The notes beneath the pieces are model-generated. The model was not told the origin of the DNA. It saw only the letters and a program-made list of their open reading frames with translations, and searched no databases. A stretch of DNA of 64,000 bases from Octopus sinensis (taxonomy: Eukaryota): NCBI RefSeq assembly GCF_006345805.1, contig NC_043010.1, positions 43,710,001 through 43,774,000 of the forward strand. Reading direction: 5' to 3'. Both the position numbers and the translations under genes were made by a program. Below are positions 3,565 through 38,331 of the stretch, one piece after another (position 1 is the first letter of the stretch; every line of letters starts with the position of its first letter).

Positions 3565-4668
3565 ATGCTTCATCCACCCTTTGTCCTTTGGCCCCACAAC
3601 AGCAGCAATGCTAAGGGCCAGGACTGTTCCTGGCTTCAATATCAGCAGTGCTGCAACTGCCAAGAAGCAGCAGACTCAGGAGCAGGTGGGGTGGAAACAA
3701 CTGCAGTGGTAGCAGGAGAAGCAGCAGGTGTGTGTACAATTCTAATGAGAGATCCAGAATTACGGATGTATGCAGGTGTGGCTGAAGTGGAATTAAAAAG
3801 TTCTGCTGTGGAACCACCGCCAGCAACAACAGAAGCAGTGGTGGCAGGTGCTGACTCACTGATGTTAAATACTATCACCACCAGCACCTCATCCACAATG
3901 ATAAGCGTGCGAATTCCTCAATCTTCTCCTCTTTCGCGCACCTCACCTCCTCCCCTTCTTTCTCCTCCATTCTCAGTTTCCTCTTCCACCATGTCATTAT
4001 CTTCAAGCCTAGTCTCTTCATCAGAGACTACCAAGGATTTGCCAGCACCCACTGCTGTCACCATGACAATAACATCAGCAGCTGCAACTAATGCTAGTAC
4101 TGTGGCTGTTTCAAATCTCCATCATTCTTCTTCAAAGTCTGTGTCAACGCAGAATCCGGTGTCTTCTTCATCAGTAGCTCCTCTACTGACAACTACTATG
4201 ATGATGATGATGTCTTCACCACTGTCATCTACATCCTCCTTGCGAAGGTCCACAAGTTCAGTGCACAACTGGTTTCAGTCAGAACTGGACATGCGAGGTA
4301 TTGAGTCAGTCTACTCTCGTTATATTATTAGTTTGCTCCTGCAACGGGACAAAGACAGTCATGAAGATAGTGGCAGCTGTGGACCTATTGAAGGGATCAC
4401 TACTGGCTTGTCCCACCTTCGTCGAGAACCCATGGTTACTACGAGCAATCAGAGTACCACTAAAGTTATGCCAGATGAATCAAAGGGAGTCAGTTGTGTC
4501 AGCAATACTAAAGTTTCCCTCTCCACTAGTGCAGGGCTCTCTGTGGCAGGGACTACTACTCAAGGGCGCCGGCAGAAAGGAGTAAACAAGAGGGAGAAGT
4601 TGCCTTTATCTGAAGAGGAGAGCAAAAAGAGAGAAGCAGTTCAGTGCCTTCTGGAGGTTTGTGATGAA
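3565..4668 (+). CDS. KIAA0232: KIAA0232-like (DUF4603) protein, coding exon 1 (start uncertain: in-frame ATGs at 3232, 3565, 3745)
   Basis: Long open frame. VHNWFQSELDMRGIESVYSRYIISLLL and LSEEESKKREAVQCL match the recalled human KIAA0232 N-terminus (VQTWLGQELEKCGIDAMIYTRYVLSLLL ... LTLEEMKKQAAVQCL). Donor GAA|GTAAGT at 4669, phase 0. A strong polypyrimidine acceptor is present at 3525-3526. Confidence 0.85.
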
Positions 4669-6487
4669 GTAAGTATTATTCTGAATCTGATTTAAAGCCT
4701 CTATATGTGTGTGTTTGTCATAATTTTTGTGGTGTATGGATGTAAATGTCCCTATCTGATGTGTTTCCAATTGAAGATATATATATCTTTAACTTACCAT
4801 TATTTTACATTTACTTACACGCTGGCATAAGTTGGATAAGTTGTCATGATCTGAGTCACTTCTTATTCAGAGTTATGACCCTTGACTATGTCTCACTTGC
4901 TTGGCTGTTCTGTTTTTTGATATGTCTTCTATAGCTAGATGCTCTTCCGAATACCTACCACTTTACAGATTTACTGGGTACACCCATTAGGGTGGTTGTA
5001 GTGCCTTCAATGAGACAAAAACGTCCTCTTGACACTACATTGTCTGTTCTTTTACCAACCACCTACACACTACATTGGTGTATTTTATTGTAGCACCAGC
5101 ATTTTGAGATCGCCTTCTACTCCGTGGAACCAGTCTTCATTACTCTATGTTGCCTCCATTCAATGTGACTATGAGAGTGGCGGAGAAAGAGCAATGATAG
5201 AATATGCACTAGGGTGCGAAGGTGAAAGAAATAAGAGTATGATGGGAGAAACTGATTGGAGAAGAGGGAGTAATGGAAGAGACAATACTGGAGGAAGTAA
5301 GGGTGCGAGCAGTAATCACAGTTACATGTTTGTTGGGAAGAGAGAGAGAGGGATGGATAATCATAGAGATAGGCTATGGTAAAAGAGAAAGTGATGGTTG
5401 TCACATAATGAGTGACCTGAAGGAAAGAAGTGGTACAGAAGGATGAAATTAGGAGGTGGCATGTGTCAGATACAAACAGATTTAATGCTATCTCTTGTTA
5501 CTCATGATGGAAGGGGAAAAGGTAGAATGATAAGAATAATAGTAGTAGAGAATTGAATATAGACAGATTCAGTGCCATTTCTTGTAACACAAGCACAGTG
5601 TGGTATAGTGAACAGGAGAGAGGGCAAGTGATAGTATTGAACATAATTAGTGACTGACCCAGATATAAATGTATACATCACTGTCACTATTTTCTGATTT
5701 ATTAAAAATATAATAAATTTGAATTTGGTACTATGTCTGTGAATAAATACTCATACTGGAATTAAATTTATAAATATTTTTAAAGCTCTTAGCCATTGTA
5801 GTACAGACATCTGGCTTGAGCACAAGAATATATACAGAGTACCTAAAGGCAAATAGATGCTAAATGATTTAATACAGTCACAGCTGATTGAGTCATTAGG
5901 GCTGCCAACCAGAGAGTCAATGGTTCACAAGCTGTTACAAGTGTAGTACTGTTTTTATTACCAAGACACTTAACTCTCCTGTCCACCTAACTGTAAGTAT
6001 GACAGGTAGTTATAGCTTGCAGTTGTCAGCATTGTAAACAACAATCATCTCCATAGTTAGCAAAGACGAATTCAAGTAGTTTTATATACCTGAGCCACCA
6101 ACATAGAATCATTAGTCCACTAGCTTATTTTAACCTTTGTCTAGCTGTTTCTAATCAGTACATTCCCTCTGTGTCTCAATTTATTGTCAATATTGTCAGA
6201 ATTTTGGAGGTTACAGTTTAGTATCTGTACCAGTGGTGGTTGCTAAGTCATGTTATCCACAATCATGCCATCCCATCCTTTTCTGAGACTTTCCAATGTA
6301 TCCTTTTGGGTGTGATTAGAGAGAGATTTAACTGTAATTCCAGCAGGTCAAATTATCATGCAGAAACTCCCTTGTTGGCTTGTTTATATACAGGTATTTA
6401 ATACCTATGTTGACCAAACAAAATCTCATGTCATTTCAGAACTAGATCTGTCTTTTTTTGTTCTTAAAGATTTGTTTCAATTCACAG

Positions 6488-6560
6488 GTGCAAGCAGGAG
6501 GAATTGAGAAATTAATAGAAGAATTAATGCTCAAATTGAAAGAATTGGAGAAGAAAGAAT
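6488..6560 (+). CDS. KIAA0232: KIAA0232-like coding exon 2 (VQAGGIEKLIEELMLKLKELEKKE)
   Basis: Acceptor ttcacAG|G and donor T|GTAAGT; 73 nt, phase 0 to 1. Matches recalled human SGIETLVEELCSRLKDLQSKQ. Confidence 0.9.
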
Positions 6561-7365
6561 GTAAGTATCCCTTATTGTCTGAGATACAAATATGTAAGGA
6601 ACTCTTTGATAAAACCTTAGAGGAATGAACATTGGAAATATTTGCCAAGAGCATTATTAATCTAAAGTGAAATAGCTTCATTCAAGAATGAAGACCAAGA
6701 TTCAGTTTACCAGGAACTTAATTTGATTTCCATAAATAGAAAAGCAAAATACTTATCTATTGTAATGCATTTTCTGTGTATGTGTGTCAATGTTTCGTGA
6801 TTGTTTTATTTTAATTTTGTATCTGAAGTACAAGTAGCATTTTTTTCTAACATATGGGTCTCTTTTTAATCATAAGTGATGTAGCCAAGATTTCTATGAT
6901 TAACATGATACTTAAAAGGTTGAAATCTTTTTATATTATAAAAATCTGTGAGTTGAGTTCTGTGGGTCAGTGGTCTTTGAGAGGCCTGTCAGACTTTTTA
7001 TCGGTTTTAATGAAGAAAAACAGGAAGTTGGATTTAGTGGATACATATAATATTGTGAAGAGCAGAGTTTGTTAGTCTATTTAATAGCAGTGTCAGAAAA
7101 AGGACACAGTTCGATGTTCCAGAGATTGAAGATCTCTAATAAAGGAGGTTTGCTGTAAGTTGATTACTCTAGCTCTCTATTATAAACTCATTTCAGTTAC
7201 CCTAAATAGATATTAGTGTAGACTACTTCATATATTGAATAAGTTGAATTTTTAAAAACTTTTACTTAGTATTCACATACTTGCATGTAAAAGTAAAGAG
7301 AAATGCATGTACACACACACACACTCTCTGATTTTTTTAAATTATTCATACCATCTCTGTTGTAG

Positions 7366-7444
7366 CAACTCAGAGAGAAGCAGTACCTGTCTCAGTAGTT
7401 ACAACTGACAGTTCAAAGTATGTAAAACAAGATCCAGCTGAAAG
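7366..7444 (+). CDS. KIAA0232: KIAA0232-like coding exon 3 (STQREAVPVSVVTTDSSKYVKQDPAE)
   Basis: Acceptor ctctgttgtAG|C and donor AAG|GTAAGT; 79 nt, phase 1 to 2. It bridges exons 2 and 4 exactly in frame. Confidence 0.85.
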
Positions 7445-8242
7445 GTAAGTCATATTTGCTTTCACCATCAACTAAAGCCAAATGGCTCTGAACAAGTATA
7501 TATTTCCTCTTGACAATTTGGTCGTAGTTGCCTCATCTTATGCTGTTTTATAGAGATAGTTTGTCATAAAAGATGTGCACATTGTATATCAATAACAACT
7601 CAGTGCTGAGCAATCAGATGCAAAGTAAGGTTAAGAGGTCCCTTAGTTCTTCTCACTGAAGACTTGGCAACCTACATAGTGCTAGTTCCAAAGTGAACAG
7701 TAAATGAGCAGAGAAAGCATGGTGTTTTGAGGTCTTACCAAAGACTTATCAACCTGTCTAGTGCTGGTGTTACAAGAAAATGCACCTGCTACACACTGTA
7801 AAATGGTTAGTGATAGGGAGGGCTTCCAGCCAGACAAACCAAGTCAAATGACATATACACCAGTCTATAAGAGCCATAACTCCCAGTAAAAATAACTTGA
7901 CTCATCCAAATGACTCATCCAACTCATGCAAGCTTGTAAATCAGACATAATACTCTCCCTCTGTCTATCATTCTCCTTTCATAATCGCATGAACTTGCCC
8001 ACCCACTCCTCTCCAATTCCAGGTCCACTTACCCTCTCACCCCATGACTCTTCTGGAGCAGTCTCAGGCACATTGATATCAAAAGGGTTAATGGTATTCA
8101 ATATGTTAACTCTTCTGATATCAATTTTTCATTGAAATACATTGCTTTTATTTCAAATAATTTGGGAAAATAACTAAAAATTTAATAAAATAACCTTTGT
8201 CCTTTTGTCTCCTGCAAAGGCTTTAAAGAAATGAAGCCAGCA

Positions 8243-8470
8243 TGTTCAGCTGGATATGCAATGTTAGTGTGCATGTGCAACAGAGTATGTTTAAGAGAAA
8301 AACTGGGTATAAGGGGTATCAGATGTAGTATGCAAGAGAGAAGACAGCTGTGTAGAGAAGAGCTGAACTGTGATTGTGGAAGGAACTGATGGAAGGGGTA
8401 GACCCAGAAAGACATGGGACGAAATAGTGAAATATAATCTTTGGTTACCGAGTCTCGTGCAGGTGATTAC
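8243..8470 (+). mobile_element. Degenerate RTE LINE C-terminal fragment
   Basis: Encodes VEGTDGRGRPRKTWDEIVK, the same C-terminal motif as the better-preserved RTE copies at 34855-35610 and 60616-61014. Confidence 0.75.
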
Positions 8471-8492
8471 AAGTGATCAAAATTTGGTTGGT

Positions 8493-8531
<39 letters not shown>

Positions 8532-8534
<3 letters not shown>

Positions 8535-9600
8535 GTAGTGATAGCTAATGGAACCACCTCTAGGGAAACACAAACAATTAGTGGTGTCCCACAGGGCACT
8601 GTCTTAGGGTCACTAATGTTCACAGTGGCCCTCTCAGATATACCCTCATCCACACACGGAACCACCCTCACAAGCTATGCAGATGGCATAAAAGTCTCAC
8701 AGGTACAAAACCTTGAAGATGGCATATACTTACAGCAAAAGTTAGGTGCAATATACAAGTAGGCTGGTGACAATAATATGCAGTTTATTGTTGGAAAGTT
8801 CCAAGGCTTATGCTATCCACAATGCAGACAAAATACACTCAACCTGGAGGTATCACAGTTCCAGAATCACAATTAGTAATTGACATGAGTCGTGATGCAT
8901 CCTTCCATGTGCATATTACTATGTTGGCAATGGAATACAGGTGGCTGACTAGCTGAATTCTTAGTACTTTCATAATAAGAGAGCAGGAAACTATGATGGT
9001 CCTCTGGAAAGCTTTTGTCCAAAACCATTTTGACTATTGCTCCCAAATAGGGTCATGATAGAGTGTGAAATTAATAGCAAAATTCGAAATAGTTCAGCAA
9101 AGCTGAAGAAGATAGCCTCAATGCAGCAAGTTAGTTACTGGAGAAGACTTTACTCCCTGGAATGAAGGTGGGAAAAATATACTACAATATACATATAGAA
9201 GATCCTGGAAGGACTTGTCCCAAACTTTGGCATTGGAAGTTATACAAATATCAGAACAGTGCACCATTCCACAGTGCCTAAAATCCTTCCATTACCATCA
9301 AAATATAGGACCAGATACTACCTTAGCTTGGGATTCAAGGTCTCAGCCTCTTCAGTATTCTCCCAAAGAAGCTAAGAGACCTACATGGTGTAGATGTAGA
9401 TGTCTTCAAAAGTGGATCTCCTGTTAAGAGTCCTGAATGAGCCAACTTCATAACAGGAAGTGGGAACGAGGGCAGCAGCCTTAAACTCCTTCATTCACCC
9501 AGTGCAAACTATTAAAGTAGGATTAAGGAAAGTGTGGCAACACCAGTTGACAGTGCCCTAGCATGGCCACAACCCTTGAGCTGACACTAATAAAAATAAA
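8532..9600 (+). mobile_element. Degenerate CR1/L2-clade LINE, reverse-transcriptase 3' part
   Basis: SGVPQGTVLGSLMF...SYAD(G) RT motifs, then LWKAFVQNHFDYCS and KILEGLVPNFGI, which are typical CR1-like C-terminal blocks. Many stops and frameshifts. Confidence 0.8.
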
Positions 9601-9863
9601 AGAGAAATATGTCTAAATGTGTGTGCTTGTATCGTTTTTAATCTATACAAGCAGTAGTATAGAAAAAGAGAGTTCAAAATGCTGTGAGAGTATATATGAA
9701 GATTTATTTAAATTAAAATTAATACAGTTAACTGGTTTCCCATTTGTATAATTTACAACTGTGTAAATTTTGAGAAACATGGAGCTGTGTCACAAATGTC
9801 ACAAACTATATTATATGTACGTTTGTGTGTGTGTGCATGTATAAATATATATATACACACACA

Positions 9864-9920
<57 letters not shown>

Positions 9921-9942
9921 TATGTATGTGTATGTATATATA

Positions 9943-11490: not shown

Positions 11491-11505
11491 AATACTTATC
11501 TTAAT

Positions 11506-11691: not shown

Positions 11692-11696
11692 ACGTG

Positions 11697-12177: not shown

Positions 12178-15100
12178 GTACTATGCTGCATTTCCTGCCC
12201 TGTCAACAGATTCCTCGCAGACCACACCTACTATAGGATCTCCTTCCACTGTAATTCCAGGCTCTGATAATTCAAATGTCTGGAAGAAAAAGCTTCAGCA
12301 GCAACAAGAACAGCAGCAGCAGCAACTGCAACAGCAGAAACAACAACAGCTGATGCAGCGTAAACGACAGTTTCACCAAGTAAAAGCTGATAAGAAATCA
12401 CATTACCAATCTGTCAGTGGTAATAATTGCAGTGGCACCTCTACATCAGTTAATTCCTGCACTAAAGAGAACAAATTTCAAACTAAGAGCAGACGGAATG
12501 GCAACATTCGTCGTAGGAATGACTCCACTATCCGGCTTGGTACTCGCAGCTCTCACACACACCATGGAAACAAAGAAAATGTCCATAAAAAAACAGAAAG
12601 CAGTAGTTTAACTACTCACTACAGTTCTGCTCGGAACAGGCACCATAATTCAGGTTTTTATCCACTACACATGGTTTCAATGAAGCAACCTCAGCAGCGA
12701 ACTGGATCAGGCAAGAGTAAGCTCTGCCGTGCTCTAACCTGTGATATGTCTGCGGAGATACAGCCTTTAACAAGTCACACTGTCACCCAACAACAGCAAC
12801 AGTTAGTTGGTGGCAGCGAGAACTTGAAACAAGGCCAATACTACCATAGAAAAATGGATAACTACAATAATTCAGATTATAAAAGCAGTATATGTTCTGA
12901 TAGAGAGGGTCAGAAATATTGTATAATTGTGGAGAATATTCTCAAAGATATTCTCCTCTCCTCCAATGAGAAACGTCCAGCTTTGGCAGCAGATAGAGAT
13001 CCATATTCCACCTCGCATACTTCGCACTGGCGAATGCAGGATCGACAATTTCAGCATGCATCGGGTGTCTTGAGTCAACAAGACATTCTGAGAAACCAAC
13101 TGGCTGTGAGATCAGTTGCACTGAATCAAACAGCTCCACAATCTATTTCGATTTTGGATCCTCCTTCACCCACAGGCTCATCCCCACTGTTTCTTCTCGA
13201 TGAAATCAACTACAGTTACTATGACCAAAGTTTTCGAGATATGAAATGGAGCAACGAGGAGATAAACCCAGTACCTAATATGGTTTGTGAAGCATTTCGT
13301 GAGGATGCCTCCTGGTATGAGAGCAACTTTGAAGACCCATTTGACACTGTGCGTTGCTCTCCTGTTGCATGCACTACAGTTGCTGAAGTACCTTCTATTA
13401 GTAGTATGGATTCTAGCAGTAAATTGCGTGCCCGACTTTATAAGAGGCACAGCTACCCACTTCCTTCACCATCATCATTAGATGATATTCAGTCTTTCAC
13501 TGAAAATAAGATTGATAATTTCTCTATGTTACTTGGCCCTTTTGTTGAAACCCAGCCGCCTATTTACCCAAGTGAAAAGGTTGACTCCTGCATGCTTTCA
13601 ACATCAAGCATGAGCAATGAGCCTGTTGGCAGTTTTTGCCATAGTAAACAAGTTGGTTCTCCAGTTGCTGAAAGTAATCAATGTGATAAAAATTTGACAG
13701 CTGTTACCAGTGAGAAATCAGGAAACAGTCCAATTAGTAATATGGTAACTTCAGGTCTGAATTGTACTAATGATGCTCTGTTAACTACAATGACCGATAC
13801 TAACCTGTGGTCAGCTGTAACACCCACTACTAGCAGCAGTTCTCAAACAGTTAGCTACACTTCACACATTGGTGAAAACCTTCCAAAGAGTCACCATAGT
13901 GCAAGTTGTTTGACCACTGAACCAAACATTGAAAGTGTATGGTCATTTCCGGGACATTTGCTTGTCGACATCCAACCACCTCAGCCAGCTACTGCAGTTA
14001 CAAGCATTGTACTCACACCCCAGTTACTTCTCACTGACTCTGAGCAGGGTTCTGTCCCAAAATCCTCAACAGCTGATGCCACTTTTACTACCACTTCAGC
14101 AACACCTTCACTGCTTTCCACTTTTACTTGTGCCACTAGCCACTCATATCTCAGCCCTAGACATCCATCGATCATCAGTGCGGAGAGTGGTAAAGTCAAT
14201 ACTTCTTCTGTCTGTTCTTCTACTGTCAACACTCCCTCATCAACTTCTCCTTGTTCTACATCATCACTGTCTCTAGTTGACCTCTCATATCTGACCCATA
14301 TTGCAGAATGTGACTCTAAAGATCCATCAAGTCTCAGTGAAAATATTTCAGTGTCCAATGATCAGAAGCCACTGAACGTTAACCGTCAAAATACTGAAGA
14401 AGACAGTGAAATATTAGACACTCTTTCTACATGTGCTGAATCACTACCAGGAAACACTTGGAAAGACACTGATATGCCAGCACCAATTCGTAGCCCTATA
14501 CTCACCCCTGGTCACTATCCTGATTTCTCGAGAGATAGTCAAACAACTGAAACTCCTGAAAACTATATGACTGCTATATACAACAAGTTAGATTCAAGTT
14601 TCTCAGCTGAACTTTTTGCCCAAGGAAGCCAGAAATGGCCTGAGCAATTAGTGTTTGATATGAGATTACTTTGGCAAGATCATCAACTGCAGTATAAGAA
14701 GGAAAGCTTTAGTAAACCTGACTCTATGCTATCAACTGTTGTTGATCCTGTAGATGGTAAGTCAATCAGTCTACCAGACTTCAGTATAATCAATCAGCTA
14801 TGGTGTAAAAATTGCAATGACAACAATATTGAGGAAGGCCTTGCAAATCCTGATGAATTTTTTACTAAAGGTAACTCTTTTTCTCAGTTGTGGAACATAA
14901 ACTGTCAAAAGCGGTTAACCATGTCCAGCCAGCCAATTCCTCAACACCGCCCATATTCCAATATTTGCTCTTACTCACCGCAACAGCTGAAGCATAACCC
15001 TTTTACGTTATTTCTACCAACTGTTGGTTCTGTAGCTGCCACATCTTCACTTAGTTCAAACTCGCCACCTAAGGTTGCCAGCTTGCCACCAATCTCTTCT

Positions 15101-18100
15101 TTTCTCCACGACAACACGTCTTTGTTCTCTCCTGTTTCCATCTTTCCTTCAGCTGCAGTAATTACCAACAGCAGCGGCAACAACAACAACAGCAGCAGTA
15201 GTAAACAGTTTAGTAACTGGGATTATTTCTGTTGTAACTATTATAGTTTCTACAGTTCTTCACCAACTGGCCCTTTCTACCATCAGCAAAGTTGGCCAGC
15301 CTCTTCCTCGTCTTTCTTCTCATCGCCTCTCCTTTCTCCTCCATTGAGCAATTCTAGTTTTATGTTTCCATTAGCATCTTGCGCCAGAGACTTTTACCCA
15401 GAAAAGCCTGTTATATCACTTCCTATCAAGGTTTTACCTACCACATTTGTTCCACATGCCATAGAGAGTGCCAAACATGAATATTCAGCTTTAGTTGATG
15501 TAAAAGATGATAATTTACCACCTCTACCTGGATGTGATAAAATGCAGGACACTTCAGAATTACCTGAATCTGATGCAACCACTAATCTTGAAAATAGAAG
15601 AAAATTCTCTGAAGTTCAAACTTCAACATTACCTTCCCCTCCTTCATCTGTTGTTTCCATTGTAACTTCTCCAGTGTCATCTTCAACTGTTTCATCAACT
15701 TCTCCATGTTTATTGTCTTCATCTCCATCTTCCTTGTTACAGACCTCTGTTATGGGTCCTTTTCAAGCTTCTGAATTGATTCCTTCTAAATGCTCTGCCT
15801 TTAAAGATGTAATTCCACGTAAACACACAGTAATGGCTGAGCTTTCTGAAACACTGGAAGACAACAAAAGTAAGTCTTTGGAAGAGGAGGAAGAATTGGT
15901 ACAACAATCCAGTCCAGTTATATCGCCTCATGAGATGTTATATTTTTCTCCCAGGACTCATTTTCGACCAATTAAGACCCCACCTGGTGTGGGTATTGGA
16001 CACAAAATTAGCCTGGATACTCTCAATGCAGTTGCTGCTGCAGATCTCTTGGTGACTGTTGGTTCAAATCATGCTAAATCACAAAGATTCATTCCTGAAA
16101 ATATTTCAGCAATGGCACCAATTCTTTATCAGCCTCCAGATCTGTTTGGAGGCCATCCCGAATGCCGATCACCTTATCAAGATTTCCACCAAGCAGAAAC
16201 TATTGAGAACAAAACAGAAAGTGTTCATCCCAAAATAGGATTTGTGCCAAAATTTCGCCTGCACAGGAATACAGATAAATACATTCAGACTGGAATGTCT
16301 CACAGCTCGCCACAAGAAGAGTCAAGATCAACACAATTTCACCTTACTTGTCAACAGCCTAATGAAAGTTTTGTAGATTATGATCTTGTAAAACTTGCTG
16401 AAGAGGTGTGTTCAGAAGATAACATTAGAGATTGCACTACTGCATCTGATGTTAGGCCATTGCCATCTGGTTTCGAGTCTGATTGCTACATGAGTCTTTG
16501 TACTCCACAGTATGGGGTTTCTGATGTAGGAGGTGCATTCAGTAGTTGTGAGAGAAATAAAATAAACACTGCAGCTAGTATCTGGAGTTATGACAATCAG
16601 TCAGAGTCTGCTGGCACCTCTTCAACACCTTCACCATGGGGCAGAGATAATATTGATAGTAGTACAACCAGTATATTGGGTTTAATGGCATCTGATGCTA
16701 AAAATCACTATCCAAAGACATGGAGTCGTGGGTCAGATGAAATACCAAATTGGACACCTGTAGCTGTAACTGAAGCAATAAACTGGACGCCAATTGCTCC
16801 ACATGATTCATGGCCAGTTGCTGTTTCATCTTCTACATCATCTTGTAGTTCTGCTGCATTGGATCCTGGCAACTGTATTCATGTATTTTCCCAGCCCTCA
16901 TCAATTGCAGATGATACACATAGGAACCCTGCTCTGAATATCAGTGGTCATGTGATTAAAGAGGAACAGTGGCCAAACAATCAAGGGAGTTCTAAATCAG
17001 TTTCAATGATGTCGAGTCACAATAGTCCTCTCAGTGGTATAGTGCCACCATTTAGTACAATCAGCAGTACAAATCACCTTTCAAAGATTCCCATATCAGA
17101 GGTAGTCTGTGCTAAGTCTGATTTATGGCAACAACAGCAGCAAAACACTTGGATAAATTCACAAAAAACACATACCTGGCAACCAGCATTACCTTTAAGT
17201 TCTGAAGCAGTTAACCCTACAATGTGGGACAGTAACGATGGGTGTGGAGATACAGGAGCTGACCACTGGATGCTGGAAAGTCCAGGTACAGAAGACTCAG
17301 ACTGGACATCAGAGACACTTGTACACAAGACATCTGGTAAACAAATGTGGCCTAAGCCAGAAGGTGTTATAAAGTCACAAAGTAGGGTAAATAAAGATTC
17401 ATCATCAACAAGCCTTCTGGGCAAGTCTTGGTCAGTGGATGACATCCAGACTGATGAACTGGACTGGTATTTCAGTGCAACATCTGCCATGAAAATAAAG
17501 GAAACAAACAAAGCTTTGATGGATGCAGCTAATAGCCAACAAGTCTGGGAAGGCAATTTATTGCAGTGCCCTGTTTCATGTGAGGACAACATCAATCGTG
17601 ATGTCTGGTTCAATAAACCACTCATCTGTACTCCAAAGCTTTCAACAGAGCAAAATGATTGGCCAAGAAGCAAAGACTGCACGCCTGAAACCTCTCTCTC
17701 TGCTTCGTCTTATTTAACTACTGACCCACTTCTAACACCATTGTCTCTTAGGAAATCAAATACATGGTTTGCTACCTCAGAGAAACCATGTTATTGGCCT
17801 GGGAAATATGGAAACGAGAACATGAATGAGGAAAACATGGCTAAAAAGTGGCTCTCTGTGCGGCCACATGAGATGTCTTATGACAAAATTACTAATCAAG
17901 GTTACCATGAAAATACAAATTGCAAGCCTGAAAATATTGGGGATGTTAAAGATATTGATATTTATAAAAAAAATGAAAATGATGTTAATAATGATAATAA
18001 AAATAAAGAATGTTGTAAAGATGTTGAAACTGATAATTTGGCTGAAGAATTATCAGCTCTAAATTGTGAAAGGATATTGAAAAAGACAGGAACTGAGTGG

Positions 18101-18439
18101 TTGTCTGAAAAATCCGATCATATAGACTGGACTTCTGTCAGAGACATGTCTGTGGCATTAAGCTGGCCAGCAGTTCCATCACAAGCATCAATCAGTTGTT
18201 CTGGTGACCATTGTCAGGAACCTCTCTTAAGGGGTTGGCTTAATAACTACACTTTAACTTCTAATAATGCAAATTTTAAGACAACCACAGTAGTTACTAC
18301 TGGAACTGAGAAGGTTGGACCATTAAACTGGGCTGAACCATGTTGTATGCAAAAGTCCACAGAGAAGTCCGCAAACAGTTTGACTTTGGATCAAACTGAT
18401 AAAACTTTAGCAGTCTCATCTAAAAAAGTTATGTCTTCG
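12178..18439 (+). CDS. KIAA0232: KIAA0232-like coding exon 4: giant 6262-nt exon, mostly low-complexity/disordered
   Basis: Acceptor ttttcattctctttaAG|G and donor TCG|GTAAGT (18440); phase 2 to 0. Contains the 2059-aa ORF. Motifs YYAAFPALS, FSPRTHFRPI and FVPKFRLHRNTDKYIQT match recalled human YYEAFPPLS, ISPRTHFRPI and FLPRLKKSGMEKSAQT. Confidence 0.92.
12291..12352 (+). repeat. Coding CAG/CAA poly-glutamine tract (KLQQQQEQQQQQLQQQKQQQL)
   Basis: Read directly in frame at the start of the giant exon. Confidence 0.85.
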
Positions 18440-19270: not shown

Positions 19271-19310
<40 letters not shown>

Positions 19311-19313
19311 TCT

Positions 19314-19482: not shown

Positions 19483-19690
19483 ATCATCGTTGTTTTATGT
19501 CCATCTTCCATGCTGGCATAGGTTGGACAGTTTGACAGGAGCTAGCCAGACAGGAGCCTGCACCAGACTTCTGTGTCTATCTTTGCAGGGTTTTTACGAC
19601 TGGATGCCCTTCCTAACACAAACCACTCAGCAGAGTTGACTGAGTGCTTTTTATGTGGCACAAGCACAAGCGAGGTCAGTTTTGGCAAAG
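19483..19690 (-). mobile_element. RTE 3'-end fragment
   Basis: CCATGCTGGCATAGGTTGGAC...CTGGATGCCCTTCCTAAC..AACCACTC block shared with the RTE 3' UTR. Confidence 0.7.
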
Positions 19691-20469
19691 TTTTTATAGC
19701 TAGATGCCCTTCCAAACACCAACCACTTTACAGTGTGGACTGGGTGGCATCAGCTCTGGCAGGGTCACCAAGTAACTTTAAAGATCCTTTGAGAGGGGAG
19801 GGGGCATTGGAGGAGGTGATCTTTTGTCAGATGATGAAAGGTTATAGTGAGACAGAGAGTCAGAAACAGGTGTCTTACTTAGAGTAGGTACATGGTTACC
19901 TGGCGAGAGAGAGAGAGAGATCAGGAATGAGGACAAAAACAGGTGTGCCATTGTAAAGGATACATGGTTGCTCAGTCTGAGGGAAGAGCAGGAGAAAGAG
20001 AGAGAGAATAGGAGACAGCAAGAGTGCAGGAAAGAGATGGTGGCAGAGTGTCGGGCATGCTCACAAGGGATGGGGGTCAGAATATAAATGGGATGGTTGA
20101 GTAAAGGAAGAGAGAGATATAGATGGTGGCAAATGCCAAGTCATACCCTTGAGGTGAATAGGGCCATGAGGACAGGATTGGAGAGTGAGAGGTAAGCATA
20201 GTGCATGAAAGAAGAGATGTAGTTTGACTTGTTTGGGTAGGGTATGTGAAAAGTTTTCTTGTTACATGTGGGTGGAACACAAGCGCTTCTAGAACTCAGT
20301 TTCACTGATATGGGCGGGTCTTCTCAAGGACTTCATATTGTCAGACATCTTGGTCCATTGTCGTTTCCTCTATGAGGTCCAACATCCTGAGATCGGAGAC
20401 ATGGGCTGAAGTGGTAAGGACCGATCTCAGGATGTTAGACCTTTCAAGGATCAGCTCTTCTTTATGCAG

Positions 20470-27420: not shown

Positions 27421-27900
27421 ATCAAAATAGATGAACATCAATGGAATTTGTATCTTTGTGGTACCAGTGCCGGTGGCACACAAGAAAACCATCCGAACGT
27501 GGCCGTAGCCAGTACCACATCAACTGGCCTCCGTGCTGTGGGCACGTAACAAACACCATCCGATCGTGGCCGTTCGCCTGTGTCGGTGGCACATAAAAAC
27601 ACCATCCGAGCGTGGCCGTCTGCCAGCCTCGTCTGGCACCTGTGTCGGTGGCACATAAAAAACACCATCCGAGCGTGGCCGTTCGCCAGCCTCGTCTGGC
27701 ACCTGTGTCGGTGGCACATAAAATCACCCACTACACTCTCGGAGTGGTTGGCGTTAGGAAGGGCATCGAGCTGTAGAAACACTGCCAGATCTGACTGGCC
27801 TGGTGCAGCCTTCGGGCTCCCCAGACCCCGATTGAACCGTCCAACCCATGCTAGCATGGAAAGCGGACGTTAAATGATGATGATGATGATGATGATGATG
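27421..27900 (+). mobile_element. RTE 3' UTR/tail copy with ~4 units of the 61-bp repeat and (GAT)n tail
   Basis: Repeat units, then CCCACTACACTCTCGGAGTGGTTGGCGTTAGGAAGGGCATC...CCCATGCTAGCATGGAAAGCGGACGTTAAA(TGA)n. Confidence 0.9.
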
Positions 27901-29095: not shown

Positions 29096-29277
29096 TATCA
29101 TCATCATCATCATCATTTAACGTCCGTTTTTCATGCTAGCATGGGTTGGACGGTTTTGACTGAGGGCTGGCAACCGGATGACTGCACCAGGCTCCAGTCT
29201 TGATCTGGCAGAGTCTCTACAGCTGGATGCCCTTCCTAATGCCAACCACTCCGAGAATGTAGTGGATGCTTTTTACG
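29096..29277 (-). mobile_element. 5'-truncated RTE tail
   Basis: (CAT)n TTTAACGTCCG...CTGGATGCCCTTCCTAATGCCAACCACTCC. Confidence 0.85.
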
Positions 29278-29304
29278 TTAATTCTTTTTGCTATAATAGG
29301 CATA

Positions 29305-29735
29305 GAAATGACTGTGTGGTTAAGAAGTTCTCTTTGCAACTAAATGGTTTCAGATTTGGCCTCATTGCACAGCATCTTGGGCAAGTGTCTTCTACTATAG
29401 CACCAGACTAATCAAAAGTTTGTGAGTGGATTTAGTAAACAGAAACTGAAAGAAACTTGTTACATATATGTATACATGTATGTGTACCCTTGTCTTGACA
29501 ATGCACATTAAATGTAGATAAATGTCACCAGCATACAAGCAGTGTCATCTGTTTGGAATCTTCAGTGAAAACATACCTAGCCATCATGTTGTATATGTTT
29601 GAAGAATTAGAGGGAAATATTCTCTTGCTTGGAAACAGGTGAGGGTTGATAACAGGAAGAGTGTCTAGCTACAGGAAAATCTGCCTTGACAAATTTCATC
29701 TAACTTGTGCAAGCATCGAAAAGTGTACATTAAAA
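29305..29735 (+). mobile_element. tRNA-derived SINE with RTE-like 3' tail
   Basis: Head GTGTGGTTAAGAAG...CTTGGGCAAGTGTCTTCTACTATAGC. Tail GGTTGATAACAGGAAGAG...TGCAAGCATCGAAAAGTGTACATTAAAATGATGAT. Confidence 0.7.
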
Positions 29736-30371: not shown

Positions 30372-30722
30372 CTATCATCATCATTCGCTTTCCATGCTGG
30401 CATGGGTTGGATGGTTTGACTGGGGACTGGTGAGCCAGATGGCTGCACCAGGCTCCAATCTGATCTGGCAGAGTTTCTACAGCCGGATGCCCTTCCTAGC
30501 GCCAACCACTCTGAGAGTGTAGTGGGTGCTTTTACGTGCCACTGGCACAAGGGCCAGTCAGGCGGTACTGGCAATGGCCATGTTCAAATGGTGTTTTTAA
30601 GTGGCACTGGCAATGCTCTCACTCAAATGTTGTTTTTCACGTACCACCGGCACAAGTGCCAATAAGGCGACACTGGTTATGATCACGCTCGAATGGTGCT
30701 TTTTACGTGCCACCGGCACAGA
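30372..30722 (-). mobile_element. RTE 3' UTR/tail copy with degenerate repeat units
   Basis: Same blocks as 34245-34600. Confidence 0.85.
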
Positions 30723-32817: not shown

Positions 32818-32980
32818 AATGTCAAAAAGTCATATGAGAACCTTGAGACATTAGTGCCGTTGCCGTGGGAAGCTGTTTACTCCAGTGAACTTGAGAAAGA
32901 GTGGCTAAACAGTGAAACCTCTTTAAACAGCAGCAGCACTGTACAATTACCAGAAGGCAAGGAACTACATTTAAAATCAC
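32818..32980 (+). CDS. KIAA0232: KIAA0232-like coding exon 5 (NVKKSYENLETLVPLPWEAVYSSELEKEWL...HLKS)
   Basis: Perfect TACTAAC branch point (32784-32790), pyrimidine tract, ccAG|A acceptor and C|GTGAGT donor. 163 nt, phase 0 to 1, which supplies the phase needed between exons 4 and 6. Confidence 0.85.
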
Positions 32981-33360
32981 GTGAGTCATCTTTGAAGTAA
33001 CATGTATTTATGCATGGTGGCTGTATAATTCTGCTTGTTTTATTTTTATCTCATTGCTGTCTTATTCTATACCTATTATATGAAAAATATCTCTAGTATA
33101 TGAATATGTGTGTCTATCAACTTGGTCCACCCATATGGTACATTGGTGTAGAAGTTTGTCATGGATGAGGATTGCCTAGATGTATAAATATTTTCTTGAT
33201 CTTAAAGTACTACATATATTTCCAACAAGAAAAAAATCTTTGAGAAATATTCAATGATTATGTGTTGAATGAAAACTAAATAAATTTCCTATGTAAATAT
33301 GTATATATAAGAAAAATAACAAGAAAGGGTTGAAAATGCATAAACATTTTTATACATGCA

Positions 33361-33517
33361 AGAGTGGCTGTATTGGTGCAAAAGCGGCTGTGTGGTAAGA
33401 AGCTTGCTTTCCATCCACATGGTTCCAGGTTCAGTCCCACTGCATGGTACCCTGGGCAAGTGTCTTCTATAGCCTCAGGCCAACCAAAGCCTTGTGAGTG
33501 GATTTGGTAGACGGAAA
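33361..33517 (+). mobile_element. tRNA-derived SINE head (GGCTGTGTGGTAAGAAGCTTGC..GGTTCAGTCCCACTGC..CCTGGGCAAGTGTCTTC)
   Basis: The same family occurs at 29305, 33895-34045 (-), 41340-41665 (-) and 19140-19260 (-). Confidence 0.8.
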
Positions 33518-33855
33518 CCTCATGTCTCCTTACAGACCAAGCAGAAATTGGTACAGCTAAGTTGGGATGTTTTACCATACCTATTGCACTCATATGACCT
33601 TGCATCTTTGGATTACCATTTATTTCAATCCCTACAAAATTCTCTTAATGAGAAGAACTTCAATTCTTTGAAAGACTGTAAAAATCCATTTAAACCGCAA
33701 GTTCTGGGAGGATGGGATCATGAAGTTGCCTCAAAGATGGCAAAAGGTAGTGGGACAAAATGGGATATATGTGGTTGAATAAAGGGATGTAGAAATATCT
33801 AAAGAATGTTTTTGAGTTTTATGTAAAATACATTACAAACTTTTTTCCATCCCAA
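33518..33855 (+). mobile_element. 3' fragment of a second mariner family (transposase C-terminus plus degenerate right TIR)
   Basis: PHVSLQTKQKLVQLSWDVLPYLLHSYDLASLDYHLFQSLQNSLN...KFWEDGIMKLPQRWQKVVGQNGIYVVE* matches the mariner YSPDLAPSDYHLF region. It ends ...CCATCCCAA followed by TA. Confidence 0.85.
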
Positions 33856-34204
33856 TATATGTATATATATGTGTGTGTCTATATATTATTGGGCTCTTTC
33901 ATTTTCCAACTACCAAATCCACTGACATGGCTTTGGTCAGGCAGAGGCTATAATACAAGACAACCATCCAAGGCGTCATGCAGTGGGACTGAACCAAGAA
34001 TCATGTGATTGAGAAATAGATTTCTTAACCACATAGCCATTCCTGCATATGCACACATATATAAAGTAAACTGAAGCTATAGTGCTAGTATTGAGGCCAC
34101 ATATATAGTTGAAGAATATCTGCAAGTTTTAATCTATTGAAGTGCTACAAGTGTTAAGATTCTGTGAGGATCATCCAACCCATGTCAGTGAAATGATGAT
34201 GATG

Positions 34205-34244
<40 letters not shown>

Positions 34245-34250
<6 letters not shown>

Positions 34251-35610
34251 CATCATCATCATCATTTAGCGTCCGTTTTCCATGCTAGCATGGGTTGGAC
34301 GGTTCTACTGGGGTCTGTGAAGCCAGAAGGCTTCATCAGGCCCAGTCAAATCTGGCAGTGTTTCTACGGCTGGATGCCCTTCCTAACGCCAACCACTCCG
34401 TGAGTGTAGTGGGTGCTTTTTACGTGCCACCCGCACTGGTGCCAGACAGAGCTGGCAAACGGCCACGAACGGATGGTGCTTTTTATGTGCCACCGGCACG
34501 AGGGCCAGGCGAGGCTGGCAACGGACACGAAACGGGGCGGTGCTGGCAACGGTCGCGAAACGGAAAGTTCTCTTACATGCCACCGGCACTGGTAACACAT
34601 CTGCAATTTCCATTGATCGATTTCCATTGATCGATTTCGATTCTGATCCTCACTTGCCTCAATGGGTCTTCACAAGCAGAGTTTCGACATGCCACCGGCA
34701 CTGGTAGCACATCCGCAATTTCCATTGATCGATTTCGATTCTGATCCTCACTTGCCTCAACACGTCTTCACAAGTAGAGTTTTGTGTCCCAAGAAGGGAA
34801 GGTATGCATACGTAGGCTGGCTCCATCCCATGTAGAAGGCCATGGGTTGTGGACTCACTTGTGCTGCCGGGTCTTCTCGCGCACAGCACACTTCCAGAGG
34901 TCTCGGTCTCTAGTCATTTCCTCAGTGAGACCTAAAGTTCGAAGGTCGTGCTTCACCACCTCGTCCCAGGTTTTTCTGGGTTTGCCTCTTCCACAGGTTC
35001 CCTCAACCGCTAGGGTGTGGCACTTTTTCACACAACTATCTTCATCCATTCTCGCCACATGACCATACCAGCGCAAACGTCTCTCTTGCACACCACAACT
35101 GATGCTTCTTAGGTCCAGCTTTTCTCTCAAGGTACTTACACTCTGCCGAGTGTGAGTACCGGCATTACACATCCATCGGAGCATACTGGCTTCATTTCTA
35201 GCGAGCTTACGCATATCCTCAGCAGTCACGGCCCATGTTTCACTGCCATGTAGCATGGCTGTTCGTACACACGCATCATACAGTCTGCCTTTCACTCTGT
35301 GCGAGAGGCCTTTTGTCACCAGCAGAGGTAAGAGCTCTCTGAACTTTGCCCAAGCTATTCTTACTCTAGCAGTTACACTTTCAGCACACCCGCCCCCGCT
35401 GCTGACTTGGTCACCTAGGTAACGGAAACTATCAACTATTTCTAGTTTTTCTCCCTGGAAAGTGACGGAAGTTGGTCTCAGAGCATTTTCAGTGTTTATT
35501 GTTCCTGAGCATCTGCCACATACAAAAACCATCTTCCTAGTTAGCCTTCCTTTGACATTGCTGCATCTCTTATGTGTCCATAGCTTACACTTGGTGCATC
35601 TTATAGAGTT
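34245..35610 (-). mobile_element. 5'-truncated RTE LINE: RT C-terminal ORF (34855-35610), 3' UTR with tandem units, (GAT)n tail
   Basis: Uninterrupted ~250-aa frame with FRYLGDQVSSGGGC, RLYDACVRTAMLHGSETW, RLRWYGHV, GRGKPRKTW (RTE-type). The 3' UTR and tail are contiguous on the minus strand. Confidence 0.93.
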
Positions 35611-35843
35611 AACATACACTTTTATTAAAGCTGAAAAATTCTTCACAGACTGTTAGTCATTTTCATGCTACCATTCATCAGACAGTTGTGATCAGATGGT
35701 ATGATCACAACATGAAACTCTTGAGTAACATTTTGTGAAGAATTTTCCAGCTTAAATAAAATCATATTACTCTACCTTCAATATCCAAGTACTATTGTTT
35801 TTCCGCCTTGTTTTGCATGTATGTGCTTACTCATGTATGTATG

Positions 35844-35875
<32 letters not shown>

Positions 35876-35939
35876 ATATATATATTCATATTTGTATGTT
35901 GGTATTTTTATATTTTGTTTGCCTTCCCTTTATTTTTAG

Positions 35940-36096
35940 GGTCCATAAAGAAACCTTGCAGCTTTTTCCTGGAGGGAAACTGCCGGCGCACTGAATGCAA
36001 GTTCTCCCATGATATTTCTACCATCACCTGCAGGTTTTGGGAGGATGGTGAATGTTTTAAAGGGGACACTTGTCCATTTCTACATGGCTATTATGC
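35940..36096 (+). CDS. KIAA0232: KIAA0232-like coding exon 6: tandem CCCH zinc fingers (C-x7-C-x4-C-x3-H, C-x7-C-x5-C-x3-H)
   Basis: KKPCSFFLEGNCRRTECKFSHDISTITCRFWEDGECFKGDTCPFLHGYY. Acceptor tatttttAG|G and donor GC|GTGAGT; 157 nt, phase 1 to 2. Confidence 0.9.
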
Positions 36097-36617
36097 GTGA
36101 GTTATTCTTATGAGTTCCATCTATGTTATCAATGTGGTACTTGGTGTGATGTGATACCCTGAACATAACCGAAAATCGTTATCGCCTGCAACTTATGTCT
36201 CAACACAAAACTAATGAGGAAGTTTCTACATAATTGCTTGACATACTAGATGTAGCAGCTACATTTTCTCAAATAATACTCTACTGAAAGACACATGAGA
36301 TAATATTGTCTTTGATGCTGTGTCTGAAAAAAAAGAAAAGACTGTCAGTTGGAGCTAACCAGTATCAAACCATAAGCACAAATTTCTCTCACAAGTTAAG
36401 CTGATGAGCTTATAAAGAAATTAAAGGACTTTCTTTCAAGAGTGACTTGAAAACATTTGACTTGGTTAGCAGTGAATTATAAAAACAAAAAATTGTAAAT
36501 TAATTGAAAATTTTAAACTTCATTTTTTGTGATGTATTATGAAATGTTGAACTGCATTTTATTGAAATAATCACTAAATTCTCCTTCATTTGCTCTCAAA
36601 TCGTTTATCCATTGCAG

Positions 36618-36744
36618 TACTGCTACTGTAACAGCTTCAGCCACTACTGCAGTAGACAAGTATGAAAGCGCAGCAGTTGGTAGTAGTTCTGAAATTGCTT
36701 CTTCTAGTACCATAAAGGAACTCTCTTTCCTACCTCAGTCTAAA
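36618..36744 (+). CDS. KIAA0232: KIAA0232-like coding exon 7 (Ala/Ser/Thr-rich)
   Basis: Acceptor ccattgcAG|T and donor AAA|GTAAGT; 127 nt, phase 2 to 0, open in the required frame. Confidence 0.75.
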
Positions 36745-37362
36745 GTAAGTAGTCTTGTAGTTTTTTTCTACTTGTTTCCTTTCAGAGACTGAACCAGCTG
36801 CCTTCCTCCTTCAGCAGCAACTCTACATACATAGCTTACATATCACGGTCCAATGTAATTTGATAAAAATATTCTCTATGGCCCAAGGAAATTTATGGAC
36901 TAGTATCTGATACTGACTTCTTGGTGTTGCACAGATGAGAGATAAATCTCCTCTAGATAAGTTGCTAGTCTATTTTAGCTAACATTGCCTGAGAATCTGA
37001 TCTATAGCCAAAATAGATAAATGTTGGAAAACATTTTTGGTTATCCAATGTTAAGCTCACATGAACTTATGCTGTTGGCCTTAAGATTTCTTTAGTAAAT
37101 TATAAGAGGTACTCTAGCAAAGATGAAATAAGCTAAATCAAGCCAGCGAGGAAGCTTCTTGTTAGCACTTGGGCTGGTAAAAATAGCTTCTAAATCTGAA
37201 ATTAACATATTGGCCAATGTAATCTTAGAAACAACATGTATGAAAGAAAAAGAAGATGGTCCCAGCAAGAATGTTTTTAAACTGTTTTAAATATACAACT
37301 GAAATACACAACAAAACTTATCAGTGTATGTGTGTGTGTGTGTCTGTTTCTAGTTTAGTTTA

Positions 37363-37583
37363 ATATTGGTTTCAAATTTTGGCTCATGGCCTACAATTTC
37401 ATGGGAATAGGTAAATTGATTACATTGACCTCCAGTGTTCAACTAGTACTTATTTTGTCAACCATGAAAAGATGAAAGACAAAGTCAGCCGTGGTGGAAT
37501 TTCAACTCAGAATGTAAAGACAGACAAAATGCTGCTAAGAATTTTGCCTAGCATGCTAACAATTCTGCCAGCTTACCACCTTC
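37363..37583 (-). mobile_element. tRNA-derived SINE, same family as 31012-31232, inverted
   Basis: The reverse complement aligns along its length with 31012-31232 (roughly 80% by eye). Confidence 0.8.
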
Positions 37584-37756
37584 AGTTGAATTTAAAGTAG
37601 AAGGTTAAATGACCCAGCAATCAAATCACCAATAGTATATTTCAAATTGAGGGCTTTTTAACTATTCTTTTCCTTTCAGTATGCAAACTTTTACATGAAG
37701 TTAAATATATTTCATTATTAAATCTCTGAACGAGATGTAAACAGTAACCGCTTGAC

Positions 37757-38046
37757 AATGTAAAGTATAATAGCCATCTCAATATGGTTAACCACAAAGG
37801 GTGGGTGTTACTGTAGCTTTTAGCCCCAGGAGAGCATCGTTGCCAGCTGGCTTTAGGCACACTATCTGTGCACTTATGGTATTTGCAAAGGGAGGAGAAA
37901 GGGATGGCCTCCCTTTGCAAATACCATAAGGGCACAGATAGTGTGCCTAAAGCCAGCTGGAGACGATGATCTCCTGGGGCTAAAAGCTACAGTAACACCC
38001 ACCCTTTGTGGTTAGCCATATTGAGATGGCTATTATACTTTACATT
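37757..38046. repeat. Long inverted repeat: 139-bp arms (5 mismatches) with a 12-nt spacer
   Basis: The left arm 37757-37895 is the reverse complement of the right arm 37908-38046. Confidence 0.97.
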
Positions 38047-38292
38047 AAATATATTTCACTTAACATCATTGTATTCACCGTTCAAATCCCAATGATGTCC
38101 ACTTTGTGATAAACTCTACACAATAACTAATTGGACTGATTGATCTGAATATATTACTGTCCTACTCTTACTCTGGTTAAACAAAAAAAAAGTCATTGTT
38201 GGTGTTTTGTTCTTAACTGCTATGTCATTTAGAGAAATATCTATGTATGTCAGGGAATGAATAAAGCAAGTGCTGTTTCTGTTCTGTTACAG

Positions 38293-38331
38293 GTGACCGA
38301 CAACCCAGCCAGCAGTCAGACATGTGTCTGA
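38293..38331 (+). CDS. KIAA0232: KIAA0232-like terminal coding exon 8 (VTDNPASSQTCV*)
   Basis: Acceptor tttctgttctgttacAG|G, phase 0, TGA at 38329-38331, followed by AATAAA at 38510. Confidence 0.65.
   Translation: MTDNPASSQTCV

Follow-up and report, generated by a model that had tools for sequence, protein, structure and literature searches.

An Octopus sinensis gene of the KIAA0232/DUF4603 family ends in two CCCH zinc fingers and may encode an RNA-binding, CCR4-NOT-recruiting scaffold

The window, a 64,000-nucleotide (nt) stretch of Octopus sinensis DNA (contig NC_043010.1, positions 43,710,001 to 43,774,000 of the forward strand), contains a gene of the DUF4603/KIAA0232 family whose protein joins the N-terminal helical block and linear motifs of human KIAA0232 to a C-terminal pair of CCCH zinc fingers. 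The eight-exon gene model and the ancestral nature of this finger-bearing architecture are held with high confidence, and the linkage of fingers and N-terminus within one gene is established by sequence comparison. As an explanation of the whole, the evidence tips slightly towards viewing the octopod orthologue of KIAA0232 as an RNA-binding scaffold that would recruit the CCR4-NOT deadenylase.

The gene is composed of eight exons, in agreement with an earlier note on this DNA that had joined eight exons into one open reading frame (ORF) of some 2,600 or more amino acids (aa):

3565-4668, plus strand: exon 1 (E1), beginning at the first ATG of the frame (3565); donor in phase 0
6488-6560, plus strand: exon 2 (E2), encoding VQAGGIEKLIEELMLKLKELEKKE, helix 4 of the N-terminal bundle; donor in phase 1
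7366-7444, plus strand: exon 3 (E3), encoding STQREAVPVSVVTTDSSKYVKQDPAER; leads from phase 1 to phase 2
12178-18439, plus strand: exon 4 (E4), a giant exon of 6,262 nt and 2,087 codons
32818-32980, plus strand: exon 5 (E5), carrying the AVYSSELEKEW motif; donor in phase 1
35940-36096, plus strand: exon 6 (E6), the finger exon, encoding zinc fingers 1 and 2 (ZF1 and ZF2)
36618-36744, plus strand: exon 7 (E7), tentative, placed by splice signals; product ending '...IKELSFLPQSK'
38293-38331, plus strand: exon 8 (E8), tentative, 12 codons plus TGA, placed by splice signal and phase only

All junctions obey the GT-AG rule and have a polypyrimidine tract, the phases run 0, 1, 2, 0, 1, 2, 0 as that note had given them, and the joined coding sequence of 8,004 nt comprises 2,667 codons plus TGA with zero internal stops, specifying a protein that is 16% serine. 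E4 by itself provides a stop-free frame of 2,131 codons, far beyond chance, and its product is mostly Ser/Thr-rich and of low complexity, interrupted by three short conserved motifs; its phase-0 donor matches the phase-0 acceptor of E5. E3 is the sole candidate combining a perfect GTAAGT donor with a product ending '...QDPAER' before YYAAFPAL, a choice confirmed by an Argonauta protein ('...EKESTPR' continuation) and by the cephalopod transcript P0062 ('QDPAEQYYAAFPAL'). The Argonauta protein also reads straight through the E1/E2 junction, and E1 is 93% identical to a sister-octopus ORF and 66% identical to Argonauta.

The two ends of the coding sequence are less sharply defined. The start codon is uncertain between 3565 and 4198, the latter being a MMMMM cluster (residue 212) at which P0062, the closest full-length relative, begins. 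Compared with the sister octopus, the 211-codon extension from 3565 contains zero indels and substitutions of 8/5/17 by codon position, a third-position excess. Upstream, at 3181-3564, the E1 frame stays open for 128 further codons with substitutions of 10/8/15, a mild third-position excess, so the 5' coding limit possibly lies upstream of 3565. At the 3' end, the E7 ORF is conserved in the sister octopus (P0007), and the alignment of P0062 to the octopus tail reaches '...LTQSK', the relatives diverging past '...QSK'. The E7 ending 'ELSFLPQSK' is possibly a degenerate form of the (D/E)FP(S/E)L motif that follows the fingers in relatives. A regular-expression scan and tblastn with mollusc tails found no downstream exon encoding (D/E)FPxL and a lysine-rich end, and tblastn with the P0062, Mactra and Patella proteins gave no homology support for E8.

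Analysis of the wider family reveals that the N-terminal block and the fingers reside in single polypeptides. A HMMER search of 1.84 billion representative proteins, using as query a profile of the N-terminal block with the fingers excluded, retrieved 187 matches; among the 148 new proteins listed, 79 are at least 600 aa long, and 33 of these 79 end in the same finger pair, sharing the C-terminal pattern CSF[FY]LEGxCRRxDCKFxH ... CRFWEEGxCFKGxxCPFLHGY. The match closest to octopus, P0062, comes from a 6.9-kb contig built from sequencing run SRR24189503, where its 1,857-aa frame is unbroken; it is collinear with the octopus model from the N-terminal block to the fingers. It reads without interruption across the positions of the E1/E2, E2/E3, E3/E4 and E5/E6 junctions and is therefore a spliced transcript of a cephalopod relative. 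When the P0062, Mactra and Patella proteins were compared with the window by tblastn, E1, E4, E5 and E6 were matched in order on the plus strand, the Mactra match beginning exactly at 32818. Since three full-length mollusc relatives thus match the N-terminal and finger exons in order, the fingers belong to the octopus gene, and the co-occurrence for which the earlier note had proposed to look is borne out. Word-indexed protein searches with the finger module had returned only proteins of at most 310 aa, none with DUF4603, including RefSeq models of Lingula (182 aa) and Priapulus (212 aa, 'ZC3H7-like'); the separate small finger gene that they suggested was rejected because the exhaustive profile search showed that long proteins had been missed.

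Octopus, Priapulus and Lingula agree in the borders of the finger exon, which starts 17 nt ahead of the first Cys, stops 8 nt past HG and has the same phase in all three. On a 1.6-kb NCBI contig (L001; GCA_014845345.1), the '...LISPKTHFRPI...' frame runs directly into the finger frame. A 38-nt GT...AG segment at 436-473 of this contig joins both frames exactly, representing either a very short intron or a 1-nt indel or assembly error. In Priapulus caudatus (KQ715835.1, L007, 1-12200), THFRPI and FAPKFKK...DKYAQT are encoded in an unannotated frame at least 1,692 codons long, in which 'EDLLTSPMTHFRPI' and 'FAPKFKKVHPDKYAQT' are read. Some 5.8 kb beyond the end of that frame, an SSDLEEEW exon and then the finger exon follow on the same strand; the 212-aa RefSeq 'zinc finger CCCH domain-containing protein 7-like' of this species appears to be only the 3' end of a KIAA0232-type gene. 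A unit like 'REPVWKxPTEExNxTEASExAMRDGWKGSQ' is repeated many times in tandem in the giant Priapulus frame. A further contig from ENA (L003) contains an 851-codon exon starting 'YASAFPAL' and a finger exon, collinear with a candidate N-terminal helical exon whose likeness was judged by eye, without Pfam support. The finger sequence of the 182-aa Lingula model LOC106172177 is the same as the C-terminus of the 1,598-aa XP_013387382.1, and the model starts 119 nt from the end of a 5.2-kb scaffold (L008, Lingula anatina LFEI02002111.1); rather than a second gene, it probably represents the same gene, as a haplotig or assembly fragment.

Several small proteins carry the finger pair by themselves. 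Those designated P0022 and P0024-P0026 (258-309 aa) combine it with an ESEADFPSL motif and a KKRK lysine-rich tail, and the gene for P0024 (L012, 9001-9777) is flanked by genes for a calpain and an aminoacyl-tRNA synthetase on a gene-dense eukaryotic contig with long unbroken ORFs. On account of such stand-alone proteins the module may also exist as an independent gene, and it may have existed alone before joining the DUF4603 body. A 154-aa flatworm protein with the finger pair (P0040, Cichlidogyrus casuarinus) bears the source name 'CCR4-NOT transcription complex subunit 1'; its sequence is not CNOT1-like, and the name, a curious coincidence with the human CCR4-NOT data described below, may stem from a fused or mislabelled model.

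Within the octopus protein, residues 338-391 match positions 71-122 of the DUF4603 model (PF15376) with E=1.1e-10 and 40.1 bits, above the Pfam threshold of 27, which upholds the earlier assignment of the N-terminal block to KIAA0232/DUF4603. The conserved and compositionally distinct elements outside the fingers are the following:

4261-4356, plus strand: helices 1-2 of the N-terminal block, VHNWFQSELDMRGIESVYSRYIISLLLQRDKD, aligning to the amphioxus, hemichordate and echidna KIAA0232 homologues
4615-4668, plus strand: helix 3 of the N-terminal block, EESKKREAVQCLLEVCDE, running on into exon 2 and lying within the DUF4603 match
12179-12202, plus strand: YYAAFPAL motif, with Y, A, F, P and L invariant or nearly so in 50 family members
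15947-15973, plus strand: SPRTHFRPI motif, the hallmark of the family
16241-16291, plus strand: FVPKFRLHRNTDKYIQT motif, family consensus FxPKFxxxxxxKxxQT
16583-18331, plus strand: tryptophan-rich disordered segment, holding 27 of the 46 tryptophan (W) residues of the protein
32872-32904, plus strand: AVYSSELEKEW motif, which precedes the fingers throughout the family

The helix 1-2 block forms the core of the profile that retrieved the 187 family members, and the family motif set W..EL...GI..vY.RYi.SLL, AAV.CL, GIE.LV.EL..KLK, YYxAFPxL, SPRTHFRPI and FxPKF...K..QT is found in this order. SPRTHFRPI occurs in ants, cockroach, molluscs, Priapulus, amphioxus, lamprey and echidna as well. A Pfam scan of E4 alone gave no match, and DUF4603 matched neither the THFRPI part of L001 nor the N-terminal exon of L003; the DUF4603 model is vertebrate-centred and sees only the N-terminal block.

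AlphaFold, supplied with 50 family sequences, gave confident structure for only a few parts of the 800-aa cockroach orthologue and predicts disorder elsewhere. The confident parts are four N-terminal helices with block-mean predicted local distance difference test (pLDDT) values of 91-97, a short helix at YYAAFPPL, one long helix before the fingers, and the finger region itself (block-mean pLDDT 81-94). Modelled alone, the N-terminal domain adopts the same four helices with pLDDT above 90. Foldseek comparison with the PDB returned nothing below E=0.9 for either the whole cockroach model or the N-terminal domain alone, so that the predicted domain is without a recognisable solved relative. Between the SPRTHFRPI motif and the fingers, tryptophan reaches 3.3% of residues, compared with 0.95% upstream (P=1.7e-8), and the neighbours of the W residues encoded at 16583-18331 are mostly S, T, D, N or P. 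This enrichment is common to the octopus protein and P0062 and is not found in the other family members tested; short W motifs may have expanded here in one lineage. A GW182-like W-rich region was considered as a family-wide feature and dropped, since the enrichment is strong only in these two cephalopod proteins; W-containing repeats were also seen by eye in Priapulus.

ZF1 (CSFFLEGNCRRTECKFSH, 35957-36010) and ZF2 (CRFWEDGECFKGDTCPFLH, 36029-36085) both follow the pattern C-x7-C-x5-C-x3-H, with only six residues separating the ZF1 His from the first Cys of ZF2. The region exceeds the Pfam thresholds for zf-CCCH_2 (PF14608; 40.4 bits, threshold 25.8) and zf-CCCH (PF00642; 35.4 bits, threshold 20.5), and the two C-terminal x7/x5/x3 fingers announced by the earlier note are thus both read in E6, whose product is 78-80% identical to Mactra, Patella and P0062. 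The aromatic residues in CSFF/CKFSH and CRFW/CPFLH are kept in both fingers and invariant across phyla. Such aromatic positions are typical of base-stacking CCCH fingers, and most characterised C-x7/8-C-x5-C-x3-H tandems bind single-stranded RNA. When the finger profile is compared with PDB sequences, CPSF30 ZF1-ZF2 ranks best (E ~1e-6), followed by ZGPAT and RBM22. Because both the spacing and the conserved aromatic positions fit RNA-binding CCCH fingers, the two fingers probably bind single-stranded RNA in a CPSF30-type manner.

Among the representative matches of the N-terminal block search whose names were recovered, the fingers are present in molluscs (Mactra, Patella), an annelid (Owenia), a brachiopod (Lingula), a nemertean (Tubulanus), a flatworm (Macrostomum), arthropods (Periplaneta, Darwinula, Panulirus, Tachypleus, Araneus, Tropilaelaps) and a hemichordate (Glandiceps), and in divergent form in a sea urchin (Diadema). 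They are absent from cephalochordates (three amphioxus species plus hybrids, in all isoforms), a tunicate (Clavelina), four lamprey species, a mammal (echidna) and, among insects, from ants; many further unnamed proteins clustering nearest insect sequences also lack them. The suspicion in the earlier note that the fusion is pan-invertebrate and not octopus-specific is thereby vindicated by the 33 long finger-bearing proteins, whose named examples span at least seven phyla, and its view of KIAA0232 as fingerless agrees with the echidna and lamprey homologues. That note had also placed the loss in vertebrates: the loss itself stands, and its timing does not, since a hemichordate and a sea urchin with fingers, set beside amphioxus and a tunicate without them, make the loss chordate-wide and older than vertebrates, with ants having lost the module independently. 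Most simply, the bilaterian ancestor had the fingers, which then disappeared once on the chordate stem and separately within insects. In the latter, the cockroach protein reads '...DRKRRHSASQRA', then the two fingers, then 'GSAQTLRPVTL', versus '...DRKRRHSSSFGCQPLTTLRPLTL' in the ant, so that the ant loss looks like a clean excision of the finger cassette. No chordate protein appeared among the finger matches of the word-indexed search either, a weak negative given that the same search missed all long proteins.

Human KIAA0232 is a high-confidence autism-risk gene, described in papers dated 2024 and 2026 as being of unknown function or having no recognisable functional domain. Neurogenesis changes when it is lost, and knockout mice show behavioural deficits. 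The protein binds DCAF7 and DYRK1A in sequential affinity purification-mass spectrometry (AP-MS), the three proteins co-localising at the mitotic spindle, and PAF1-complex contacts, including CDC73, are listed for it. In the supplementary table of an interactome preprint, as far as its text was available, CNOT1 is the strongest prey of KIAA0232 (28/23/29 spectra, score 0.998), accompanied by CNOT2, CNOT3, CNOT9, CNOT10 and CNOT11 as further high-confidence preys; each of the six CNOT names occurs once in the table text examined, always with KIAA0232 as bait. A search of the literature available found no paper discussing KIAA0232 together with CCR4-NOT, CNOT1, CCCH or DUF4603.

Taken together, these features are consistent with a long, mostly disordered scaffold comprising a small N-terminal four-helix domain, three linear motifs and a C-terminal module of AVYSSELEKEW and two fingers. 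In the ancestral and octopus proteins, the fingers would select mRNAs directly while the scaffold would bring in the CCR4-NOT deadenylase, so that bound mRNAs would have their poly(A) tails shortened and be repressed, by the logic of TTP, Roquin and Nanos. Deadenylase delivery is proposed because a tandem CCCH module on a disordered, CCR4-NOT-recruiting scaffold is the design of TTP, and with other domains that of Roquin and Nanos. CCR4-NOT recruitment as the effector step, drawn by analogy, is a tentative element of this proposal and falls somewhat short of being probable. In chordates, where the fingers are missing, the scaffold that binds the effector would remain, and any contact of the protein with RNA would pass through partners. 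More doubtful, though possible, is the extension that an ancient bilaterian adaptor, binding RNA and recruiting CCR4-NOT, survives in chordates without its fingers as KIAA0232, and that the scaffold there still binds CCR4-NOT and acts on mRNA turnover through its partners. The RNA-binding scaffold that the earlier note had proposed as the ancestor stays an inference, strengthened by the CPSF30 likeness and by the co-purification of CCR4-NOT with human KIAA0232.

Several points weigh against this account. The exon linkage in octopus itself rests on homology, and at least one cockroach RefSeq isoform lacks the fingers, so the cassette may be optional or alternatively used where it is present. 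CPSF30 ZF1 is a protein-contact finger, and likeness to CCCH fingers is therefore no proof of RNA binding. The CCR4-NOT link derives from one over-expression AP-MS data set, obtained in HEK293T cells with the fingerless human protein; the same data set also contains DCAF7, DYRK1A and CDC73, and its authors stress spindle localisation. The W-rich stretch, which would suit CNOT9 binding, is enriched in just two cephalopod proteins among those tested, and the RNA-binding and deadenylation roles of family members are putative.

The alternative that survives best, though an unlikely one, accepts the gene model and assigns the fingers a role other than RNA binding, either as a protein-contact module in the manner of CPSF30 ZF1 with CPSF160/WDR33 or in the binding of another ligand, for example poly(ADP-ribose). 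The best PDB alignment spans CPSF30 ZF1 as well as ZF2, and PARP12-like and ZAP-like CCCH models of Pfam, matched weakly and below threshold, point the same way; moreover, chordates kept the rest of the protein after the fingers were lost, and the fingers are therefore dispensable for at least part of its function. Set against these are the single-stranded RNA binding of most characterised tandems of this spacing, the invariance of the base-stacking aromatic positions across phyla, and the association of the human orthologue with an mRNA-decay machine.

Improbable, too, is a protein acting mainly as a nuclear or spindle scaffold for DYRK1A-DCAF7 or the PAF1 complex, in which any RNA bound by the fingers would be nascent and CCR4-NOT would be secondary or driven by over-expression. 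Its strength lies in the confirmation of DCAF7 and DYRK1A by sequential AP-MS, in the shared spindle localisation and in the listed PAF1-complex contacts including CDC73, whereas CNOT1 exceeds the other KIAA0232 preys in score and spectral count in the part of the table available, and the six subunits represent three CCR4-NOT modules and, in the table text examined, occur with no other bait. Largely refuted and very improbable is the notion that E5-E8 form a separate downstream gene for a stand-alone CCCH protein of ~160 aa, the eight-exon model being a chimera of neighbours: the short proteins (at most 310 aa) from the word-indexed searches, including the Lingula and Priapulus RefSeq models, the stand-alone 258-aa relative between unrelated genes in a compact eukaryotic contig and an in-frame ATG just upstream of E5 speak for it, whereas 33 long predicted proteins and an RNA-seq contig hold both ends in one frame, the Lingula model is a scaffold-end duplicate of the C-terminus of the 1,598-aa protein, the Priapulus model sits directly downstream of the unannotated THFRPI-containing ORF, the THFRPI frame of L001 continues into its finger frame, and the E4 donor and E5 acceptor agree in phase (0/0).

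The introns and flanks of the gene are populated by repeats. ORF fragments at 34855-35646 (minus strand), 60616-61014 (minus strand) and 8367-8759 (plus strand) share '...GRG(K/R)PRKTWDE(V/I)VK...', the last giving a sub-threshold reverse-transcriptase match (22.8 bits, threshold 29.6); the three are probably decayed remnants of retrotransposons, and two lie within introns of the gene. A dispersed repeat at approximately 4935-5090, 19546-19884, 27435-27870, 29160-29408, 30420-30662, 34289-34630 and 59901-60590 has a frame that reads '...LDALPNANHSE...' ahead of internal tandem units ('...RHGARQSWQTATNGRCFYV...'). It is spread over introns and flanks and looks like an element of the short interspersed type. 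Downstream, long AT/GT-rich microsatellite tracts that translate as YIYIYI or CVCV occupy 38500-39130, 46880-47570 and 49280-49760. No further protein-coding gene is evident in 39000-64000, and ARAGORN found no tRNA genes in the whole window.

The architecture already exists in RefSeq and UniProt predictions and is therefore not new at the database level; what is new relative to the literature searched is the step from the finger architecture to the function of KIAA0232, together with the CCR4-NOT link. The ancestral finger pair and the six CCR4-NOT subunits found with the human protein yield a bench-testable hypothesis of mRNA deadenylation control, which, if true, would make post-transcriptional control the disease-relevant function of this autism-risk gene. 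In addition, tractable invertebrate orthologues that still possess the fingers are now named, the finger loss is dated to the chordate stem, and several RefSeq models (Priapulus 'ZC3H7-like', Lingula LOC106172177) can be viewed as likely fragments of a KIAA0232-type gene.

Comparison with known systems places the octopus protein closest to human KIAA0232 (mouse D5Ertd579e) and its invertebrate orthologues. The N-terminal helical block is shared, the octopus-block profile matching the echidna orthologue with E ~1e-19, and named KIAA0232 proteins of echidna, lamprey and amphioxus stand among the 187 profile matches. The motifs YY(E/A)AFPxL, SPRTHFRPI and ...K..QT are common to both in the same order along a long disordered body, as the earlier note had recognised for three internal motifs. 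The chordate proteins differ in ending without a CCCH finger, whereas the octopus protein, about twice as long, adds the cephalopod-type W-rich expansion and the AVYSSELEKEW-plus-two-finger module. The invertebrate orthologues of Lingula (XP_013387382.1), Patella (XP_050397839.1), Owenia (CAH1782956.1), Periplaneta (XP_069704966.1) and Glandiceps (XP_077992217.1), labelled 'uncharacterized' or 'C3H1-type domain-containing protein' in databases, share the full architecture, namely the N-terminal block, YYxAFPxL, THFRPI, FxPKF, (L/V)YSS(D/E)LE(E/K)xW and both fingers. They differ in length and tail, most having an acidic (D/E)FP(S/E)L stretch and a lysine-rich end, whereas the octopus model has a short 'ELSFLPQSK' tail.

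Beyond the family, ZF1-2 of CPSF30/CPSF4 (yeast Yth1) resemble the octopus pair in that the two CCCH fingers lie close together and are alike in spacing and aromatic positions. CPSF30, however, is a ~30-kDa cleavage and polyadenylation subunit with five fingers that recognises the polyadenylation signal, whereas the octopus protein has two fingers in 2,667 aa; nothing is alike outside the fingers, and the resemblance is therefore one of fold and not of orthology. The likeness to TTP/ZFP36 resides in the proposed logic, by which a tandem CCCH module would select RNA and a disordered region would recruit CCR4-NOT. Fingers of the TTP/TIS11 family are of the C-x8-C-x5-C-x3-H type with an 18-residue linker and a (R/K)YKTEL lead-in, in contrast to the x7 spacing, six-residue gap and lack of a YKTEL lead-in in octopus, and there is no sequence relation. 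Judged by finger number, spacing and lead-in, the octopus gene falls outside the CPSF30 and TTP families; with every defining feature tested found in it, it is a member of the DUF4603/KIAA0232 family.

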